The position numbers and the translations under genes are program-made. The notes under the pieces were generated by a model. It was not told where the DNA came from and did not search any database. It saw nothing but the letters and a program-made list of their open reading frames with translations. DNA of 64,000 bases from Bigelowiella natans CCMP2755 (taxonomy: Eukaryota; Protista; Cercozoa): positions 1-64,000 of the forward strand of contig ADNK01000631.1 in assembly GCA_000320545.1 (NCBI GenBank). The letters run 5' to 3'. Shown here piece after piece: positions 459 through 54,040 of this stretch (its first letter is position 1; each line of letters opens with the position of its first letter).

Positions 459-1310
459 AATGCGTGTGCGTGTGTGTAAATTAAAGCAACTGAGCAATAA
501 CGAGGATTGATTGTACATAGTCAGTTTGTACATTGTCAGTGTAGTAGATATGGTAGCTGGCCTCTGATGTGTGGTAAGCGATTCCCCAGGGACTTCCAAT
601 TGAAATCGAAGTTCCAAGGCCGTCTGCATTCTGTAAGCCTCTCGTACCAGTGCCCACAATAGTTGTCGACTTTGAACAACAAATGCAATATTTATTCATC
701 AACTCTGGAGGGTATGCTGTACTAGTTATTATGAGAGATGAATTGAATAAGATTACATTGTCTGGTGTGCCTTCGACACCCAGTATGACTTTCCGTATTC
801 TGTGCCCTTGCTGAAATACAGATGAATAATACTTAGATTTGAAATCTAATGATTATGGGTTTTCTGTAAGCGGACTACTCATCACTCTGAGGGCAGCATA
901 CCGTGTCTGCGATGAAGAACGCTGTCGCATCTCCATTTACAGCAAACGCCTTTGCTCTTGACATAGTGGCTACCCCACGTGCACCATCTACATAGGGCTC
1001 TCCGGCAACGAATTTTGTAATTAGTGTCGAGACAGTCAATCCCGGTCTCGGGCTATTGTACTCATATATGCCTTGGCCACTTTCAGATGATAAAACGAAG
1101 ATAGAGTCATTTTTGAATGGGTGCGGCGTGACATCGTATGCGGAGTAACTGTTAGTTCCAAAGCTGTAGACCAAAGAATTTGGTGAAGAATAATGGGCAA
1201 TGGCTACGCCCAATTGCAGAGCGAGGACATGGACTCGACGGCCCTGAAAGGAGGACGGCATCTCAAGCAGGCATAACAGTGATGATGATGAAGATGATCC
1301 TCGTGTCAGT
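1..1310 (-). CDS. NHL-repeat (beta-propeller) protein, multi-exon; probably runs off the window start; 5' exon(s) uncertain
   Basis: Splicing at 901/811 gives FFIADT|QGHRIRKV. Further exons give VGTGTRGLQNADGLGTSISIGSPWGIAYH and IKRYDPNTERVINIAGG, typical of NHL repeats. Confidence 0.65.
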
Positions 1311-1349
1311 TCTGAAACGTTATTTCACTTTTCATCGTGCGACAACACA

Positions 1350-3400
1350 TGATCATCCAAAGAACCGGAGATGGCCTGCGATTGTTCAAGTTCTGCAGTT
1401 CTCATGATGCTTGGTCTTGCACGGTTCGTTGATGGCGCTGCTGCAAGCACACGCCTGTCTCCCGTGTGGTTCTGGCGTGTAGGCGCATGTAGATTTGCAT
1501 CAATGCTTCATTCATTGTTCATTGTTCACAATTACCTCCGCACACTGCAAATGTCTTGCAACATTTTGGAAGTGTAGTTCATCATCATTGTTCATGATGC
1601 TCCTGCGGCTTCATTCACTCGTTCATCTGGTTCGATTGTGGCACTTTCTCTGAGATCTAGTTGATTGAGGAGGTCACAGGTGAGTCAGCATGGCTTGCGA
1701 TCGTTCAACTGCTCCTGTGAACCGCTTCGTTCGTCCTAGCTAGGCATTCATTCACGTGCCGCACCGTGGCCGGCGTGTTCACAGGCGGGTGGGAAACAAA
1801 CCCGCACATCAACTTTCTCTGGAGATTCTTCATTGAACAACAGACACAGCAATGTGACACACTTGTCACATGTCAATGTGACACACAGGTCACATTGCAT
1901 GTCTGTCATTTGAGAAGGTTACGGGAGAGTCGGCATGACCCGCGATCCTTTCAACCCCTCCTGCCAGCCTGTGGAACCACTTTGTTCAATCGTTCACGAG
2001 GGGGCAAAGTCAAGCAGGAGAGCACAGGTGCGATGGATTACTCGTGGAGCTCGAACAATGGACACAGCAATTTGACATGCGCCTGACGATCCTTCGTTTC
2101 GACTCATCCATTGAAAGCGCTCCGTTCACTCATCAACTCGCTCGAGTGAAAAGGTGAAAGGAAACGTGTGGGCCTCCGTGCTGGCGTGTCCTCGCGATGA
2201 ACTCAAATGCTCTCAAGCACTCTGAACTGCTAGACTAGAGCAGCACGACTCCTGCTCGTTCCCCCACAAAACCAACCGGACAGCACCGAAATCTGAACAA
2301 AATCCCTGCATCCCCCTGCAAGGAAGGCTAGAAGGGAAAAAGAGAGGCAGTCTAGCAGTGTCTGTGCAAGTCTCCTCGGAGTGGAGCAAGCAGAGAGCCT
2401 TGAAGTGAGCTAGTGATCAGCAGCAGATCACCACCGCAACACAACATTGCTGCGCTCATCACTGGATTCTGAACGATCTGACCTTTTCGGACAACACCGA
2501 ATCACGAAGCTGCTGTGCCTGCTGCGCACACGAGCGTTCATTGCGCACAACTTTTGAAACTCAGAGCAGCAACGAAGGTAGCACCTGGCTGACGTGCGCT
2601 TGTATGTACTTGAGAGCACAACAGGCATGTGTCTGTGATGTGTGTTTGCACGTTGGAGTGCAAAGCCTGCCCCACAAATCTGACTTCCAACAGTGTTCAC
2701 GTGTAAACTCACATGCACCAGCATGTGTCTGTCACACAGCTTGTTTGAGCACGCGCTATCCACAGTTGCCTGTGCTAGGTGCCACGCTAGCACGTGCAGC
2801 GCGCTCGCGGGTACGTTGAGCGCACGCACAATGCATGATGTTCAGGCAAATGAGACTGGCCAAAATTTGCCCCTCCTGTTGCACAGCTCGGTCAAACCTG
2901 CAACAAATTTGTGTTTTGGAAAGACAAAGCGTGAGCTTTTGAGAGCGCTAGAGCGATTTGCAGCTTCAGCGCGTTGTCAGTGAGAAAGTGAGAAATGTTC
3001 GCACGCAGCTGAGATTTTTCCAGTGCATGAAGTGAGCGTGTGCGCACGCGTTTGCGCATTCAAAACACTGCGGCAGCGCTGCATGTTGCTTGAAACTCTC
3101 ACACTTTTCGCAAAAATGGCGTTTTTGGCCTTCGAAAGTGACACGTTTTTGGTCGTTTCTCGGTCAAAATTGGATTTTGACGCTCGGCCAAGTCTGACTA
3201 TGTGTGATATATACTGTGTCTATTGTTCTGCACAAGCTGCAGGTGTGTTACGTTCTGTGATCACATTCATCACTGTGATGCGGTGCGCGCATGCGCACAA
3301 CTGAACTCGCTCATGCCTCTTGCGCTGCAGCCAAATGTTGCCGGGTAGTTATTTGACCGCGGGTTGTGAGCCTGCCTGCTAGCTGCGCTGCGCTCCATGC
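1350..3400. mobile_element. TpA-depleted degenerate repeat/transposon relic
   Basis: Strong loss of TpA with CA/TG excess; survivors mostly CTAG or GTAG. No recognisable coding domain. A terminus-like segment at 3120-3192 weakly resembles the right end of the 25-32 kb element. No matching left TIR found. Confidence 0.5.
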
Positions 3401-23215: not shown

Positions 23216-24526
23216 ATGGGAGCTTGTGCGTCTGGCGATTACAGCTACAAAGGATCGGATGCTGAGCGGGACCGAGACCGGCAACTGCAGAGAGAACTCA
23301 ATCGCTACAATCAACATCAGGAGGAAATTCATAAACTCTTACTTCTCGGTGCTGGACAGAGTGGCAAATCAACAATGTTCAAACAAGTGAAGCACAACTG
23401 TATCTTTCGCGCACTTTACCAATCTCACTTGCTATTTTACAGATGATGATACTTTATGGGGATGGATTCTCTGAAGCAGAACGAAAATCTTACGAACCAA
23501 TCATCTATGGAAATATTATTCAATCGATGCAGGTTTTGCTCGAACAAGCGGATTTATGGGCGCAGACAGACAGTAAATGCGAGGTTAGCAATAAGCTCAG
23601 TGAAGAGATGGATGAGATTGGAAATTTGCGACTGGATGAACCACTCGATGAGGTAACACTAAATTCTATTGATAAGGTTCAAATGATGGTGAATTTTGTA
23701 ATTAGAAATATGCTGGGATGGTTTGGAACTTGTGGAAAGATCCTGCTATTCAAGCCGTGTATGAAAGGAGAAACGAGTTTCAATTGAATGAATCTGCAGC
23801 GTACTACTTCGAAAATGTGAAACGTATCGGAGGAGAGGACTACGTTCCCAGTGAGGAAGATCTATTAAGATCCCGTGCTCGAACAACTGGAGTCATTGAG
23901 AACAACTTCACCATTGACGGAAATCGTTTCCAAATGTTCGATGTAGGCGGTCAGAGAAGTGAAAGGAAAAAGTGGATCCATTGTTTTGAGAATGTTTCTT
24001 GCGTGCTTTTTGTAGCTGCTATCAGTGCGTACAACCAGGTTATATAGCAATTATCTCATGTACTACTTCGGCACTAATAATTATCTCAGGTGTTATTTGA
24101 AGACAATCAAACAAACCGAATTGAGGAGGCTTTGGATCTTTTTGAAGAAGTTTCGAATTCTCGATGGTAGAATTATTTATTTAAGAAAAATACATCTTAT
24201 ATTTCCTAACTAAATACAGGTTTCAGAAAACTTCGATTGTATTGTTTTTGAACAAACGCGATGTTTTCATGGAAAAAATCAAGCACAGTCCCATCACAGT
24301 CTGTCCATCTCTGGAAGATTATTCTGGAGATCCCGAAGACCCCGAAGAATCTGCAGATTTCATTATCGACACATTTTTGGCTAAAAATACCACTGAGAAA
24401 ACGATACATCCGCACTTAACATGTGCAACAGATAGAACAAATGTGAATTTAGTCTTCGACAGTGTGAAGGAAACTGTGATGAAAAAATCATTGGAGGCTG
24501 CAGGTTTGACAACTGCTGCTTTTTAG
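23216..24526 (+). CDS. Heterotrimeric G-protein alpha subunit, multi-exon
   Basis: MGAC lipidation N-terminus; KLLLLGAGQSGKST, RARTTG, DVGGQRSERKKWIHCF, FLNKRD and TCAT motifs. Confidence 0.97.
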
Positions 24527-25041
24527 CTAGACACTTGCACTTCGTTGTGGTCGCGTGCGTATGTTAGAAGAAGCTCAGGCGTGAATCACCATTAGTATCA
24601 CCATTTCCTCATTTTGCTTTGAAGAACACCAATTCGGATTGTTTGCATGAAATGGGCACGCAAAGGTCCGTGGTAAAGACTGTTGAAGCACTTTCACATT
24701 GTGATGGCGCGATGCGCGTGACTAGGTGTGCGAGCAAATCCTAGAATCGGCGCGTTTTTCCTCTAGTTCTCATTCCAGCATTGTTGTGAGACTCAATTCA
24801 TTGCTAGGTTGCACTAGTGCAACAGCACACTCTAGCACTTCGCAAAAGAATCAACCAAAACATGATGTCTTTCACGCAATGTGCTGCTGCCCAGTCATTT
24901 TCTCGTGTGCAAAACTAGAAAAATGCATGCACACATGCTAGCATGCATGCACAACTAGAAAAATGCATGCACACATGCATGCACAATTCCTCACACAATG
25001 TCACTGATGTGAACTAGTGAATCACGGCATGCTTTCCACGG

Positions 25042-25068
25042 CTTGGTTGTCCACTTTGGAGACAAGAA
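25042..25068 (+). repeat. Left TIR (15 bp perfect, about 27 bp with transitions)
   Basis: CTTGGTTGTCCACTT-TGGAGACAAGAA versus reverse complement of the right end CTTGGTTGTCCACTT-CAAAGGCAAAAA. Confidence 0.85.
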
Positions 25069-25810
25069 CCACGCGCCGCGAGTTGCTGAACCCACGTGTG
25101 AAGGCCACAAACGCGCTTCGTTGCACAATCGCGATCACGATCGCCACACGTGCGTCGAAAGCAAATCAAAACTCCCACGCAAACGCGAGCTCAGATTGCA
25201 ATGTGTGTGAATGTGAAAACCATCTCGTGAAACATGACATGAGGAATGTGCGAAGTGCAATGACAACGGCGATGTTCTCTTCACAAAGCGGAAACGTGTG
25301 CACGCCACATGCGGTCATGCCATGTGTTCCATCTGAGCAAAGTTGTGCGCATGGCGTCGAGTGCCGAATGTGATTTGCATCATGTCAGAACAAACAGCAT
25401 TTGCAGCGTTCCACACTCGACATTGCAAGGCACAAATGATGCCTTTTCATGCCAATTCAGCCGCGTCAATGATGTGTTACGAACATGCCAGTGCATTCGT
25501 AACATTCAGCCGTGAACAGCGACATGCATGCGTCTCATCAATCTCCAGACAGGCTCACAAGGTCATGAGAGAATGCCACAAAATGAACACGTCTCCATGT
25601 GTGTGACTCATCCAATCAATCACAAAAACTACCATCATCATCATCACTAGAAGATGACATGAAAATGTCATCTCCACTGCTGTCATCCATTCCAACATCA
25701 GTGTTAGCATGAGGGTCGGCGCACATGGGTTTCGGTGCTTTGTCCAATCTCCTTGATTTGCGTGTTGGAACCTGATGGAAAAGATGGTTGATGTGTGAAA
25801 ATGAGCTGAT

Positions 25811-28487
25811 TCATGCATGCAACGTCACCGAGCTAGTGTGTGCATCTCGTGAAGTGTGTTCTTGGAGTCTTTGCCTTCTTGTTGCGCTGTGAACAATGCG
25901 CAAACATGCGCCAATTGATGCTGTGCTTGTTTCATCATCATCTTCATCGTGTTGCATCGCATCTTCACTTGAACTTGGTTCGTCGCTGTCATCGTGTTTG
26001 TGTTCACTCGTGTCGTCTGTGCCGGAACTGTCTGATTCATGCTCGGGGTGATGCCTAGCCACATTGCTTCGAAACCATTCTGGGCTAGAGTGAATCAGCT
26101 CAATGATTTGTTTCTCGAAAGAAGCGATGTGATGCTTGATGCGGGTTTTGTCCATGCAATTAGGTTGTTGGTTGAGTTTTGTTTTGCACATGTCAACATT
26201 GTTTGCAGTTGAACAGCATTTGTTGCAAGTGCATTTCACGTCATCGTCGTGCGATGATTTGTCTTTCACAACTTGAACAAGGTGTTTGATTCGCTCCATG
26301 AACCAATTGGATGTCTTTTGCAAGTTCGGAGTGTTGTTTCTGATTTCTGGTTGTTTCCGCTGAAGGTGTCCTTCTCCCATGGAAGTGCAAAATGTTTTGG
26401 TGCTGTTCCACATTGTTTTCATGATCTTGAAACATTCATTTGCATGTTTGATGTCTTCAGAATGGGTGTCCCGAATCATTTTGCGACCACAAATTGACAA
26501 CATGGATTCACCAGGCTCTTCATTGCCATGATTTGGACTTTCACTGAAGTTCAACCAGAAATCAGTGGAGGCATTTCGGTGCATCTCAAGAACAATGTGG
26601 TTCATGCATGTGTTCCTTCCACATTGCCTGTGTCCAAAATTGGCAAAAGCTGCTGTGACATTTTTGTGCAAACTGAAAAGCATTTGAAAGTCGTCGACTT
26701 TCAAAGCGATCATGTGATCACGTAGCAACGGTGTGCAAAACCGAAGCAAAGAGCGCCAAGAATCCAGTTCTTCCCTCTCTGGGATGTGTTGTCGATGAAC
26801 GCTGCAAGCTGGACACTTGTCAAACGATTCTTTGTTGTCAATGTTCCAGTTGGCATCCAAAATCTCGTCCATTTCACATTTTTTGCCAGAGTGTGTCACT
26901 CTCAAGAGTGAAAAAAAGTGCACAATGTGCGCGATGTGCTTTGGTTTCGATTTCCATTTCTGCCCAGGGTGCAGTTTTGCAAACAATGGCATGAAAATGT
27001 CTTCATGGCTTCTCCATGCGAGCATGGAAAGAAATTTGCAAGAGTGCCACCATCCCAAAACAGGCATGATCAAGTTCCTCACATCCAAAATGTGCAAACT
27101 TTTTGACCAAAATGCCTGAGCAATGACACACAAGGTTGCGAATGTGCCAGCACGTTCGCAACAAAGTGGAACATTGTGAATGACCTTCAAAATCCTTTCA
27201 CAAATGGCCACATCCGAAACCACAGTGATCATGCAATTTTGTGGAATGTTCTGTTTGCATGAGCTCAATGAAATCTTGAATGGTCCTTCATTTGCCGAGA
27301 CGTTGTGTTCGTTCATCTCGCAAGGTTGCACATGTGATGGAGCGTCGACCCGGTTTTTCACGGCCTTGATGTGTGCGTTCCTTTTCTTTTCATCTGCCAC
27401 ACATCTCATCACAGCATCCACTGTCACTTTGATGGGCACATGCCTGATGTCCCATTTCAAACACAAAGCAACACCGGACAAATTGAACTCAGCTTCGTCG
27501 ATGAAACGCATGAACCAATTGGATTTGTCACTGAACAATGAGGTGATGTCACATTGAGGATGTCCCTTCTCAATGTGCCAACATGGTTTCTTGACAAAAG
27601 GATGGATCACACTCGGATGCTTCTCAATGGCCACTGCACACCATTGACAGTTTTTGTGCACATTGTTTCCTCTTGGCATTTGAACTGCCAACGCTTTCCC
27701 GCAATTGTCAATCCACATCAAGCTCAGTTTTGATTCTCTGATTTCCATGCCATTCTCAATGCGGAGTTGTTTGCATCTCCTCAAGAATGAAGATTTTCCA
27801 CCACCAATCCCAATCTTGGACAAAAGTTTTGTGCCATTTGATGATGATCCTCTGAACCGTGGTGACATCAGCAAGTGTTTCCACTTGGATTGCAACCGCT
27901 TGTGTTCCACACTCAAAGCCAGCAGACCCATTGAAACAAAATGTCGGATGCATGTGTTGAGTTTCTTTTGTTTCAGTGCCCATTTCAATTGTGACAATGA
28001 AGACAAATGACCAAATTTGTCACATTCATTCTCATGGACGAAATGGGTGCAGAAAACCTCGAACAACTCGAAGCCAAAGAAACCTGTTTGACATTTGCAA
28101 TGTCACTTTCTGGTTGTGAATGTTGTGAAACAGACCTTCAGTTGGGAACAATCTGCTTCCGGCTTCAAAAACATCCAAATGAATGTCATCCATTTCGGAT
28201 TTCATTGAACTCCTCACCAGTTTGGACAATTTTGTCCTGAATCCTTTCCAGGAAAATCTTGACTGACGTCGTTCGTTTTTTCCACTGCTCACAAACATGC
28301 ATCATGATTTACGAATGCACTGGTACATTCGTAATGCAATTTCTTGAACATCATTTTTGCATTTTGAATCAAAATGAGATGTTGAGTTGAAAGTGGACCT
28401 CAAGATTGCATTTTCAATTGCACGTTGCTTGAAATGACGACAATGTGCTTTTTGCACAATGAGCCAAAAAAGAAGATACGAATGCAT
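25811..28487 (-). pseudogene. Putative DDE-type transposase (Academ/DUF6589-like motif order), mutationally degraded
   Basis: 751-aa ORF (25811-28066) plus probable upstream exons. Motifs WIDN (~27710), VVSDVAI (~27210), PVLGWWH (~27050), NEEPGE (~26515). No Tyr in 751 aa. Family assigned from motif recall, not from a search. Confidence 0.6.
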
Positions 28488-28559
28488 GCCGAAAAATTAA
28501 TTTTAAAACTTTAATTTTTCGGTCAGTGACGATTTTCGTAATTTCACCATGATCACAGA

Positions 28560-29351
28560 TGTGAGAGGAGATCATTCATTTGGCGCCTTGCAAGAGGGTG
28601 CTCCAGAGCATCACGGGCGCCGCAGCACATTTCGGAAACATTCGATTGCACACGCCCAACTACGCTCACTCACGAACCTCACAATGCCAACGCAAGGACA
28701 CGGCAAGCTCGACTGTGAATGTGAGGGATTCGGTTTTGGGAAGTGTTCAGAACGTGAGACGGGGCTCGGGTGACAGACTTGCACTTTCAATTGGAACTCG
28801 CAGCTCACATTGTTCACATCACTGACTACACCGTGTTCGCATCACCTTCTAGGAAAATGCACTGTTTTGGATTCTGTCTGGTGCCTCTCTGGCATGAAAG
28901 ATCCGAACAACCATTGGCAGCTGCACGTCAAACAGCCCGCCGAACAAGGCAAGCGGGCCCAATGGAAGAAGCATGACGTGCACGCGCTGAAGAACACCGA
29001 GCGCCGCCAAGTCGCGAACCAGAAAGTGCTGAACACACTCACCGCGTCGGTGTTTTCCCCGGATGATGGGAAAGAAACATTGGGTCTGAAACTTGATGAA
29101 TGGGTTGAAAACAAAACCATTGCAAGTCCAAGATCCAATGAATGCGCCAAGATGTCTCAACACAAAGCAAAACAAGGCATTTGACAGCAATTTCGCACAT
29201 TTCAAAACAAACTTCTCAATCGTCATTGTTGTCAGAGGTTGTCAAGGAGTTCAAGAAACACCTGAAGAATTTGAAGAAACTCCACCAGGAACTTGCAGAT
29301 CAAGACCAATCAGAATCGGTGTTGCAATTTCATCAATCAAAAATGCAATGA
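28560..29351 (+). pseudogene. Small transposon accessory gene of unknown function, probably intron-containing
   Basis: Protein-like ORF pieces 28580-28825, 28810-29184 and 29142-29351 separated by intron-like segments; the last piece is helical and charged. Confidence 0.35.
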
Positions 29352-29396
29352 CGAACACACTGGCACATTCGTGACATCAAAATTCTCATTGAACAG

Positions 29397-32168
29397 TCGT
29401 CATCATCTGTGGCGAAGACGAAGGACAAGACAACTCCGGGCAAAGATGCGCCAAGTCAACCAGACTTGAATCTCCAGGGTGTTCTTCCAGAAGGAATCAC
29501 CATTGAAGGTCATTTGGTTTTTTCACGTTCGTGCAAAACAATGTTGACTGTCTTTTGGTTCAGAACACGACAAGAATGTCAACGAAGGAGAGGACACCAA
29601 AGTCAAACTCGGAGCAGAAATGGAGGCATTTGTCGACAAGATCTTTCTGGGAACATGCGAACTGAAGCTGGACCAACTTGTCGGTCCGGAATGTGGAAAG
29701 ACAGCTTCTCGGAAACTGAGGCATGGGGAAGTGCGCAAGATTCGAGAGTCAATGATGAAGAACCGGTCTGTTCACATTGTGCTTGGCGCACTTGTTCGCC
29801 CCTCTGCGCCCGTGTGCAAAGAGAAGCAAACTTCTCTCAAATGTTCACGGGAAGATCCAAAGCAATGCGCAACGGAGAATGCACTCCAAGTTCAAGAAGG
29901 CTTCTGGGCTGAAGTGATTGACGGGAATCACCGCCGGGTCGCACTGCAAGAACTGCTGGCAATCTGCAAATCTGAACGTCACAACAAAGTTGCTTGCAAC
30001 GTTTTCTGCACAGATGACCCAGAGGACAACAAGATGATCCGCAAACATGGTCATCTTGTCAATGAAGCTGACAAAATCAGCATCAAGTCTGCAATGTGGG
30101 ATGCCATCGCCGAGGTGAAGACTTCCTACCTGGAAGCCAAGGCAATGGATTCCAGGACGGGTCCCACCAGGTTCACCAAAGAACACATTGGCGATTGGAA
30201 AGAGCTCACTAGCTCGTGTTCCAAAGGCGGTTGCGGTGCGACCTGCCTTGGATTGGTGGTTGGACTCGCAGAGTGGAGCGCATCCAGCTGGAACCTCTTG
30301 GAGGAATTTCACAATCCGGGACCCGACGCTGTGCATGACGCACCCAAGGACTTCAAATGGATCAGCAAGGTTCGCGGGATGGACGAGAAAGATTGCACGG
30401 CAGAGATCAAGAAAGTTGCAAGCATCAAAGAGCACACCATCAAGCAAATGATCGTCAATCTGCAAAAGAAACAATGTGAGTCGTCTTTTTTGTTTGCATC
30501 ACTGCAGCCTCAGTTCTGATGTCATCTGTGTTTCAGGGTCCAAGTGCCTCACAAGTCTTTTCATGAAAAAATGTGACCTGTCATCATGGGGGGCATTGTG
30601 CGAGAAGTTTCAAGTTCCCCGGAACGACAAGTGGCTCAGTTTCGCAATTGAGTTCCACCTTGTTGAAAACAAGATGGCTCCAGAGAAGAACAAGCGGGTC
30701 ATTCCAGATGTTGCATTGAACAGTTTCCAGAATCATGTTGACCAATGCAAAGCAAGACGCACGGTGGAGGATGCAGAAAGAATTCAACTCAAGGGAGATG
30801 CGATCGACCTCCAAATCCTCACCGGAGTCGTCGTCGATGAACCAGGGATCGTCATGCAATCGAAGGGCACATCAATGGGCATGTGTTTCTTTTTGAAGTT
30901 GCGAAAATGCCAGTGTGTTCGCAACTCTGTGTTTTTTGTTAGACCACGTCTTCGTTGACACTCTCATTGGAGCTTTCGACATCGGGCAATCTTTCGACGA
31001 CAATGCTCTCAACATCCACGTCAACAAGATCCACGCTGGCAAACAGCTGGACATGGATCGCCACATCACTGGCAACTTCACCCTCACCATTCGGTGTCTC
31101 CCTGAAAACTCCAAATCTTTCAGGGAGATCATCGACAATTTTGGGCATGACGACGTCGACGTGCTCCATGCATGCGAGCACGATCGACGTCCACAAAAGC
31201 CCAAGACCTCTTTTGCTCCGATGATTGACGCATGCATCATCGCGAAGAACGGGCGTTGCGCGCATGTGGACTTGGGGAAGAGCGAGAACCTCATCATCAC
31301 TTCGAGTCCAAAGGTCATCACCGTGGAAGGCAAGTCTTTCACAGTGGACAGAAAAGGCGATGTGATGGAACATCTGTGCTCCACTTTTTGCGAGGAGAGA
31401 TCTGCTGTCCTAATTGCCCATGGTGGACGAGGGTTCGACGCGTGTGCACTGTTGCACCACACACGCAAATGCATTCAGTTGAACCATCACCGGGTGATCA
31501 CCAACCACACCAAGGCCAAAGTCCAATCGATGATTGGAAAGGATGATCCATCTTCTCAGAAAGAGCTTTTCCAGACCAAGTTCAATGCCATCTTGACCAA
31601 GCACAGTGCCCTTCATCGTTTTGGAACTCACTGGCATGACCTTGGCCGTTCTGAAGAGAAGTCGCCCGATGATGCCGTCGACGACGACGAAATGCCTCTG
31701 ACCGAGCTCGTCAAGAAACAAGCCAGTCCAACCAAAGGCAAAGGTGAACAACTCATTTTGATTGTTGCTTGCATGCTGGCATGTTCGCAACCCACATGTT
31801 TCTCAGGTGAGAAACGCCCACACACTTTGCGTGCCAGAGTGTCTCCTGCGAAGAAGCCCAAGACCGCCAAGACTGTGGGCAAGTCCATCAAGCGCCGCAC
31901 GTCCGGTCCAGAGCACTGTCACTTTTGTGAGAGGCCCGTTTTGCCCAGAGAGCGTGCGGTGTGTGCTGAATGCAACTTGGTCGCCCACAAGGCTTGCATG
32001 CCCATCAAGAGCACCGCGTTCAAGTTGCGATTCTGTTCTGAAGACTGCGAAGAAGCGCATGAAAAGATTGCTCGCGATGCAGAAAATCTTCAGACAAAAT
32101 CAAAAAAAAAAAAAAGGTCTACAATGGCCCATCATGGCCCATTTCTGCATGTCTCATCGCTTTCCTGA
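29397..32168 (+). pseudogene. Transposon cargo gene: ParB/Srx-like domain + degenerate DNA methyltransferase-like domain + PHD finger, multi-exon
   Basis: EVIDGNHRRVALQEL (~29914); LKGDAIDL..DHVFVD..VMEHLCSTFCEERSAVLIAHGGRGFDACALLHHTRKCIQLN; CxxC..CxxC....HxxC..CxxxC PHD-type finger (~31917-32049). Intron-like segments join the ORFs, e.g. 30879-30942 in matching phase. Confidence 0.65.
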
Positions 32169-32509
32169 TGAGCAAACGCTCCATCTACAGTCTGTTTTTC
32201 CTTTTTTGGCCACATTGTTTCAATCTCAACTGCATGTATTTTTCAATGTAAAATCAATCAATGTCACATTCATGAACATAAATTCTCTTTCGTGCATTCC
32301 AAAACGCGCTTCATTTTGCAATTTGCTGACTTGCCTCCGTTTGCTCTCGCATCTGCCATGCACATGTTTGATTCGCTGCCCCATTTGCACGTGTTCATTC
32401 TCATGCTGCGCTGCGTTCGCGCTTTTTCCCCGCCATGTCATTTCGCGCAATCGCAACTTTGCCTTTTGACAGCGCTCTCAGGCATCACATTTTGCGTCGA
32501 TCGTGACCA

Positions 32510-32536
32510 TTTTTGCCTTTGAAGTGGACAACCAAG
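32510..32536 (-). repeat. Right TIR
   Basis: AAGTGGACAACCAAG immediately followed by the ACGG target duplication. Confidence 0.85.
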
Positions 32537-33271
32537 ACGGCCTTGTTCTAGTTGTTGGCATTGCGCTCGCTCTCTCTAGCTCTCTAGCTCTCATGGAAGT
32601 GTGCCCATGCAAGAACATTCCAATGAGAGCAGATCTAGAGATTCAGAACATGACTTTCTAGCTAGCTCTAGCTAGCTCTAGCTAGCTAGAGCTAGCTGTG
32701 TGACTTCATTTCAGTCGAGTTTTGCCATTGCATTGCCAGATTGTTTCTGCAGAAGTTGTCTTTGCGCACACTGGCAGAGACAAAGAGTGAACTAGTGAAA
32801 GTGCTCAGCATAGCAATTTAGTTCAGCAGGAGGACAATGAGGTCGTCAGTAGGCAAATTTTCATGTTGCCATTTCGCAATTTTTGCTACTGCCGATGTTA
32901 GGGAAATAAAATGTGGGGTATGCTAGTATCTAGAGTATGTTCCATGAGCAGCAGCGTGTTATGATGGACACCAGGTGATGCTATTGTTGTTGCATTTCTC
33001 ATTCATTACATGCGAATGGGCACATTGATTGGCGGCTGCCGCAATCATTTTCGCTTCGTGGAGCGGCAAGATTTTCAGTAGCTTTAACAGCCATGCAATG
33101 TTAAAGGATTAGTCAGACCAACTGTTAATTTCATCAATACGCACACACAATTGGGCATGCACACTACGCACACCTTATTCATTAGAAGCCTTCTAGCAAA
33201 TGTACAGCCATAGCAGGAGATCGTCGTCTATTCACCACGTGAGTAGGTTGGCTACCAGGCCTATCGTACCT

Positions 33272-52599: not shown

Positions 52600-54040
52600 T
52601 CCATTATGGACACATGCGTGCACGGACGGGGTCAGCGCAATGTAGCAATTCTGATGACTGTGTCTAGGTGTGAGCCTTGAGGGGTTTTCAGCTCCAAGTA
52701 AACTACTGGCCCTGCATGCCCCTATGCCCCTGTGCACGATGTGACACTCAGGGGAATTAGACATCATTCTAGCAGAAATTTGAGGGTGCAAAAAAAGCAG
52801 ACTCAGGGTTCAAGAGCAAACAAGATCAAAGCAAAATGCAGAAAATTGTTCGCGCGAGGGTGAAAATGTCATCGCTTCAGGGTGCACCCACACCTGGTCA
52901 AAACCCGGTCACACTTTCCGGCATCCGAAAAAGTGACCTGACTCAAAAAGTTTTGATCCAATTTCAATTTTTTTTGCAGATTCTGAAAGCTCTCTCATCG
53001 AGAGCTTTCAAGGGATCTCAACCATTTTTGTCAAAAAGAACGGGAAAGTTCTCAAATTTTGGAATGAATCTGGCTCGCGCTGACATGCTTTTGCAGTGAA
53101 AGTGCAAAACGTTCATGAGGTCTTTTGGTTCAGTTTTCGCGCGCGCAAACGTGCAAATTGCACAACGTCCAATGGCCACATCACGTGGAACAACAAAATC
53201 CATGCGCGCACACCTCGCCATTTTTCTTCAAACCAAACACATGCAAAACGGCAGCTAATCCAACAAAGTGAAAAATCTGTTTTTTTGCAAAAAAAATTGG
53301 AAATTTTCACAAGGCATGTGCATCCAGTTCAGCATGCTGGACACTTCAGCTTTTGCACTGGCTCAGCTCGATGACTCATTGCCCACTGCTACCATTGACA
53401 GGCATGTGGACTGTGGACTTCGTCGAAAGTCACGTTTCCTGCATGCTAGCATGTTCACCAGCATGTGACCGCCATGCACAGCTTGTTCAGTGCTGGAGCA
53501 CAGGAGTGCAATGGAACATCGTGAAGTGTCATCAATTTGTTGAACCGTTGTCGAAAGTGGACTCAAACACCAAACGCGTGCAACTGTGTTCACCCAATCT
53601 CACGTGCAAACGCGCTGCGCATCCTGGACAGACTTCGTGCATCGACCATTGCGGACACGTGGCATGTGCAAAAGTGCAAGCCGAAGCAAAGACAAAAACT
53701 GATTTGACCAAACTCTTCACACTCACTAAACGTGAAAGACACCACAATCTTCCAAAATGACTCCAAAAACGCCTTCGATTGGGTTTTGCACTCGAACACT
53801 TCCGAGCAATTTTTTTGCCTTCTGCCAGCAGTTAGTGCTCACGAATTCCGGAGCAGCTGGAAAATTAATGGCAGTGATTTGTCGACGAAAGAGCATGTCG
53901 CATTGTCACAATGACCTGTGTTTCCCTTGCAATAAAAGCTCCGTTCACCACAGCTCTAAGGGAGAATCTTTGTTCATTGTCCATTGTTCATTGTTCATGA
54001 TGGCGGATCAACAGCTGATTGTCACTGGTCTGGCTTCATC
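52600..54040. mobile_element. TpA-depleted region: probable non-autonomous element relic plus mutated flank
   Basis: Almost no TpA in about 52790-53930; 11 bp inverted repeat at 52984-53010; no TIR pair or TSD found. Confidence 0.45.

Follow-up and report, generated by a model that had tools for sequence, protein, structure and literature searches.

We analyzed a window of 64,000 nucleotides, the whole stretch of Bigelowiella natans CCMP2755 DNA considered here (contig ADNK01000631.1, positions 1 to 64,000). It carries a multi-copy DNA transposon (the element) set between single-copy flanks, with the following features, strand being given where it was assigned:

24675 to 25041, no strand: left flank, single-copy, 367 bp, starting about 150 bp past the G-alpha stop codon; its 10 remaining TA all lie in CTAG
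25038 to 25041, plus strand: left copy of the target-site duplication, 4 bp, ACGG
25042 to 32536, no strand: cut-and-paste DNA transposon, multi-copy, 7495 bp, TpA-erased, 30 TA left
25042 to 25066, plus strand: left terminal inverted repeat, about 25 bp; this end is common to 11 other loci
25811 to 28066, minus strand: transposase ORF, JGI Bigna1|70429, 751 aa, no Tyr; DUF6589-like, predicted DDE/RNase H fold with a helical insertion
28810 to 32168, plus strand: divergent cargo region of several ORFs (probably spliced), with a weak ParB/DndB-like part, a possible N6/N4-methyltransferase-like part and a C1/PHD-like finger
32512 to 32536, minus strand: right terminal inverted repeat, matching the left one exactly over its first 15 bases and at 22/30 overall
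32537 to 32540, plus strand: right copy of the target-site duplication, 4 bp, ACGG
32537 to 32810, no strand: right flank, single-copy, 274 bp; its 13 remaining TA all lie in CTAG

A search of the B. natans genome with the element returned 2 copies of nearly full length, several sizeable partial ones and numerous fragments, with common ends equivalent to 25042 and 32536, and 4-bp target duplications were present at 5/5 two-ended insertions in that genome. The element therefore has the hallmarks of cut-and-paste DDE transposition (terminal inverted repeats, target duplication and dispersed copies) and is a cut-and-paste DNA transposon, not a virus. A previous reading, made from the sequence only, had drawn the affected span as 24700 to 32850; its core is the element, and the outer parts (24700 to 25041 and 32537 to 32850) are single-copy host flank that is itself TA-depleted except at CTAG.

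The 751 aa ORF is 100% identical to Bigna1|70429 and has 35 relatives, with the motifs WxDN, WHxxK and NEE. Pfam and PDB sequence searches gave no family name and Foldseek gave no match for the transposase; DUF6589 appeared at E 0.01 in one homologue, and Atlas clusters resembled DUF6589 at 0.92. The structure model of the window transposase is itself poor (Z 5.1), and its architecture was read from a model of P0037, an intact Amorphochlora homologue (34% identity), for which the best match was the P-element transposase (Z 9.3; rmsd 6.1 over 333 residues), in a tie with ISCth4 (Z 8.5) and integrases and little ahead of Hermes (8.2) and RAG1 (8.1). On this model the transposase has a predicted RNase H-fold DDE architecture. 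The element resembles DUF6589-like DDE transposases, whose fold is common to P element, hAT, MULE/IS256 and RAG1/Transib, in its inverted repeats, target duplication, predicted RNase H fold with helical insertion, and WHxxK motif; it departs from them in its 4-bp duplication and in the lack of a Pfam match above cut-off, and duplication length and Pfam domains assigned it to no named superfamily (P, hAT, MULE, Kolobok, Sola). Our literature search found no paper naming DUF6589. In the cargo, DndB (E 3e-5) and C1_1 (E 2.5e-4) fall below the cut-off and the methyltransferase-like match (0.88) is a lead only; the same layout is seen in Amorphochlora.

Within the element we counted 30 TpA against 530 expected (observed/expected, o/e, 0.057), together with a TG+CA o/e of 1.60, whereas TA o/e in the host DNA of the window was 0.82. 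The TA-free gaps span 26723 to 28310 (1587 bp), 28850 to 30127, 30210 to 30940 and 31411 to 32120, and AA was abundant (o/e 1.27). These counts bear out what the sequence-only reading had noticed, namely that TpA is nearly absent and wholly so from about 26730 to 28300, that AA runs persist and that host DNA is normal. In this window the loss follows the mobile DNA and its near flanks, TA recovering within about 400 bp of the element ends. CpG loss was rejected as an account, CpG o/e being unchanged (0.81 in the element, 0.75 in the host).

The consequences are visible in the encoded proteins. Tyr was counted 0, 1 and 0 times in the ORFs of 751, 299 and 417 aa, the single residue that had been remarked on earlier; homologous proteins contain about 2-6% Tyr in most cases. 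Opposite the Tyr columns of its homologues the window transposase carries His or Cys at 48/93 (52%, background 11%), in agreement with the suggestion that His and Cys had replaced Tyr. The lack of Tyr is not shared by the Amorphochlora homologues, which keep Tyr as well as TA (TA o/e 0.80 and 0.58, TG and CA near 1).

Comparison of individual copies showed that TA had been converted by mutation. The two closest copies, L002 and L005, differ at 170 of 4665 sites, and 161 of these differences are of the TA/TG/CA class, with just 2 transversions in 4665 bp. L002 retains 125 TA; 114 of its TA correspond in L005 to 49 TG, 44 CA and 21 unchanged sites, and to nothing else, in line with the earlier proposal of a DNA-level conversion of TA to TG or CA striking both strands. 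The reverse change from TG to TA was seen at 1/723. In addition, 302 sites were TG in one copy and CA in another (9-23 for most control pairs); since such discordance is a two-base difference, it is best explained by a common ancestral TA. At sites still TA in L002, opposite outcomes were nearly as frequent as same outcomes in the least related pairs (same:opposite, W/L003 49:45, L004/L005 42:41), and thus much of the mutation postdates copying.

Across six copies, TG and CA outcomes were equally frequent and unclustered. We rejected processive one-strand tracts, because the outcomes show no strand runs, and simultaneous two-strand conversion, because TA became CG at only 8/714 sites (1%) where no ApT overlaps. 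Tabulating changes by context over the copies, as had been proposed in the sequence-only reading, left A after A or G unmutated (RAV 0/1143, compared with TAN 91/133). Unclustered outcomes, rare TA to CG and untouched AA and GA are hard to reconcile with editing of RNA or cDNA or with a polymerase of the WA type. RNA editing ahead of retrotransposition was rejected: the element passes through no RNA stage, and its single-copy flanks were hit as well. The pattern would fit independent single-strand lesions at TA that are fixed at replication. None of the three findings that the sequence-only reading had named as refuting its proposal was encountered. Taken together, these comparisons leave us nearly certain that a TpA mutator acted on the element.

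Such a process has already been described in this species. Mettrop et al. reported TpA to TpG/CpA mutation at about 1000x background in two integrated viral regions of B. natans mutation-accumulation lines, with 230/231 de novo changes being A:T to G:C (bioRxiv 10.64898/2026.01.13.699255). The same work described TpA-poor transposon genes, proposed an ADAT-like deaminase and named an ADAT2 candidate, Bn78255; its low-TpA list (Table S6) includes Bigna1|70429 and 70430 (bioRxiv 10.64898/2026.01.13.699255). The system is therefore not undescribed, as had first been supposed, and even the 751 aa ORF is tabulated there. The label "repeat-targeted" was right in that mobile DNA is the target but too narrow, since the foremost target in the preprint is an integrated virus present in single copy, with the signature also on LTRs and other transposons (bioRxiv 10.64898/2026.01.13.699255). 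Species, change (on both strands) and proposed enzyme class are the same in the two studies; Mettrop et al. took their measurements on integrated viruses and deduced from composition that transposons are targeted, whereas here the process is followed copy by copy. In the parts of the main text and supplements available to us, we saw neither a comparison of individual copies nor a rule for CTAG/TAG; ApT as a target, spreading into flanks and evidence beyond the cultured strain did not appear there either. TpA hypermutation itself is thus known; what we add to those parts is the rule on sequence context, ApT as a target, the zone in the flanks and the signal from plankton.

Not all TA sites mutate equally. 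Sites in CTAG in L002 were kept in other copies at 16/26, compared with 37/340 for other TA (P-value 8e-9, the related copies being not fully independent). We mapped the preprint's de novo list to contig C3187 of the genome (scaffold_10 positions, one offset), which placed 164/168 changes on TA; the integrated algal-virus stretches were used for context counts only, piece by piece. On this list, no hit fell in CTAG where 6.2 were expected (P-value 0.002), G followed the edited A in 16 cases against 36 expected (P-value 2e-5), and C stood two bases 5' of it in 22 against 36 expected (P-value 0.005). Judged from these sequence counts, TAG and CTA contexts mutate more slowly and CTAG most slowly. 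A special protection of CTAG is not required: the two neighbour effects, multiplied, already lower the expectation to about 1.6 events, and 0 were seen.

A second target emerged in copies with few or no TA left, where A>G at ApT reached 115/326 in L004, 27/44 in L010, 22/41 in L012 and 16/72 in L007, compared with 1-7% at control adenines; in copies L002, L005 and L006 it was at most 1%. With an outgroup the direction was 81:1, outcomes at the same site differed between copies, and AAT and GAT were hit and CAV was not. The text of the preprint places all de novo hits on TpA (bioRxiv 10.64898/2026.01.13.699255). In its de novo list, all four events outside TpA were at ApT (4/4, P-value 0.004; scaffold_10 positions 402688, 416158, 431449 and 450385), 3 of which could be TpA in the parental strain; per adenine, this puts ApT at about 1.4% of the rate for TpA. 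ApT would thus come second among the contexts in which A>G occurs, being struck at about 1% of the TpA rate after the supply of TA has run out, and probably through a shared pathway. The ApT fraction may gauge dose in copies whose TA is exhausted. ApT loss also correlates with copy age.

TA loss reaches 270-370 bp into both single-copy flanks of the element. Over 23 element ends, non-CTAG TA per 150 bp climbed from 1.4 adjoining the end to 7-10 by 600-900 bp, and the nearby G-alpha exons hold 42 TA where the host rate would give 56. Within 150 bp of the element ends, CTAG stands at about 8x the host level, an excess for which sparing alone does not account. Being symmetric on both sides, the loss favours spreading after insertion; part of it could reflect insertion into stretches already erased. 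RIP, the repeat-directed mutation of fungi, likewise leaks into adjacent single-copy DNA (PMC3105345).

The signal appears to extend beyond the cultured strain. Seawater-metagenome contigs carry a relative (about 27% protein identity) that had no DNA match in the B. natans genome, an empty search being weak evidence. Its TA o/e is about 0.3 and its TG/CA 1.4-1.5, and 71-80% of the differences between near-identical versions are TA/TG/CA (19/25, 24/31, 28/35, 20/28), on contigs that may be collapsed multi-copy assemblies.

As to mechanism, we lean, by rather less than firm conviction, towards host-directed adenine deamination of silenced foreign DNA by an ADAT/TadA-like enzyme. After insertion, the transposon copy would undergo TpA-directed A:T to G:C hypermutation by the host, through a deaminase recruited to a chromatin domain over the foreign DNA. 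This enzyme would convert dA to dI, which would be fixed as G at replication, so that TG and CA would arise from TA equally often, with a single strand hit at each site and with the copies changing largely independently. The slow attack on ApT would follow, the zone of loss would extend a few hundred bp beyond the element ends, and Tyr codons and TA-containing signals would be gradually destroyed. TadA-type enzymes favour a 5' pyrimidine, and for them ApT is an unexpected second choice; here AAT and GAT are hit and CAV is not. The A to G change with a 5' T preference that is expected of ADAT/TadA-type deamination was found in the copies and in the de novo list, and TadA8e acting on genomic DNA prefers TA (PMC13225742). 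Long open frames are kept while Tyr is lost, which suggests that the process may serve in defence.

A route through a modified base is a less probable account, which we would put at rather unlikely: A (as 6mA) or T (as oxidised thymine) would be marked at TpA, and weakly at ApT, and then deaminated or mispaired, much as 5mC leads to C to T loss. It keeps its place because sequence does not reveal which base of the palindromic TpA and ApT was damaged; that base could equally be T. Both dinucleotides are palindromic in the manner of maintained methylation marks, the decay of TA loss along the flanks resembles a spreading mark, and the element may carry methyltransferase-like cargo, a lead only. 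ApT is the usual eukaryotic 6mA context, and the second target fits it. Against this route, our literature search found no modification data or methylome for B. natans, and the element's own cargo is ruled out as the general cause, since viruses, LTRs and other transposons bear the signature too. An MT-A70 search of the B. natans genome was empty, and its control was also without a match.

Error-prone synthesis recruited to silenced chromatin, the Pol eta-type candidate of the sequence-only reading, is improbable. Pol eta makes A>G changes at WA and favours TA; patch synthesis would reach into flanks, and the de novo list contains one pair, at positions 450383 and 450385, that lies 2 bp apart in the same line and strand. 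However, a WA polymerase should also strike AA, which is untouched, A after A or G being spared throughout (RAV 0/1143), and the near-lack of transversions between the closest copies, the missing strand runs and the almost uniform A:T to G:C direction of the de novo changes all speak against it. Finally, most DNA holds slightly less TpA than expected, and TA o/e varies from 0.3 to 0.8 among relatives. An intrinsic compositional bias, or selection against TpA in the element, can nevertheless be set aside with hardly any reservation, given the opposite outcomes at polymorphic sites, the change of Tyr to His/Cys in the transposase, the affected host flanks, the TA and Tyr kept in Amorphochlora, and mutation seen de novo without selection (bioRxiv 10.64898/2026.01.13.699255).

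Set beside known systems, the B. natans process has partial parallels. Fungal RIP similarly saturates mobile DNA with dinucleotide-specific transitions on both strands and leaks into single-copy DNA (PMC3105345), but it acts C to T and creates TpA, the opposite of the A:T to G:C change here, as the sequence-only reading had pointed out. RIP also requires duplication; the element is multi-copy, but the preprint's main target is single-copy, and, unlike RIP, the B. natans process is seen in clonal lines and leaves CpG unchanged. TadA, ADAT2-ADAT3 and the engineered TadA8e share A to G change with TA preference; their natural substrates are tRNA and the second context, ApT, belongs to the process here, making the link a candidate one. 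APOBEC3 and ADAR hypermutation of retroelements and viruses is alike as defence by context-specific editing; those enzymes work on RNA or cDNA, where their edits cluster in tracts on one strand, whereas here strands are mixed without runs, on a DNA transposon and its flanks.

A natural, locus-targeted A:T to G:C genomic mutator would be a new kind of eukaryotic defence, the credit for which belongs to the 2026 preprint. The element adds copy-level proof of transposon targeting, the flanks show signs of a spreading zone, and the metagenome signal suggests activity outside a single laboratory culture. The context code sets what a candidate enzyme has to show: TAH above TAG, CTAG slowest, ApT at about 1%, AA nil. 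More tentatively, and at somewhat less than even confidence, we propose that one host pathway may edit A:T in foreign-DNA chromatin by a two-tier palindromic code (TpA, slowed by neighbouring C/G, then ApT), spreading several hundred bp and operating also in uncultured marine plankton. If true, this would make the pathway a naturally occurring, targeted editor of adenine in DNA, with a specificity unlike any characterised deaminase, and the code would provide a direct biochemical assay for the enzyme.

The copy of the transposon in the window is a mosaic across 27600-32536: its left part is ~96% identical to the copies at loci L002, L003 and L006 of the B. natans genome, and in its right part transversions place the copy at L004 closer. 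This pattern of sequence similarity suggests recombination between subfamilies. At L002, a further fragment of the right end of the element, in inverted orientation (1174-1278), sits ~220 bp left of that copy's left end. Dense patches rich in CTAG, the TA context that mutates most slowly, adjoin the element ends at L005 (1-1500), L006 (1000-1500) and L007 (4000-5082), where they reach up to 38 CTAG per 500 bp. In the window, the nearby host gene is:

23443-24527, gene for a G-protein alpha subunit (Pfam match at E 3e-48)

This gene ends ~500 bp left of the element. Two other TA-poor islands were seen in the window: one at 1250-3250, in which many of the surviving TA sit within CTAG, and one at 52750-54000, which contains a 486-bp stretch without TA and looks like a small decayed element.

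The cargo at window 29409-32168 may encode a ParB-like, N6/N4-methyltransferase-like and PHD protein; catalytic motifs are not evident in this predicted protein, and the cargo layout is the same in Amorphochlora. A second, distant member of the family (29% identity) was found in the B. natans genome at G000:C1447:90161-91964. L050, the JGI metagenome sequence encoding the relative P0019, has an observed/expected ratio of 0.40 for TA and of 1.36 for TG/CA, though 2.6% Tyr is retained.

Within the element, a 28-bp near-palindromic motif is repeated at window 25476, 27135, 30898 and 31764, and its versions differ at TA/TG/CA positions. A further copy, at 28308-28335, sits between the divergent transposase and cargo ORFs, in a region with several TA retained. 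The non-CTAG TA left in the element are concentrated at 28310-28540, between these two genes, and at 32120-32280, near the right end; both clusters may represent protected or selected regulatory DNA.
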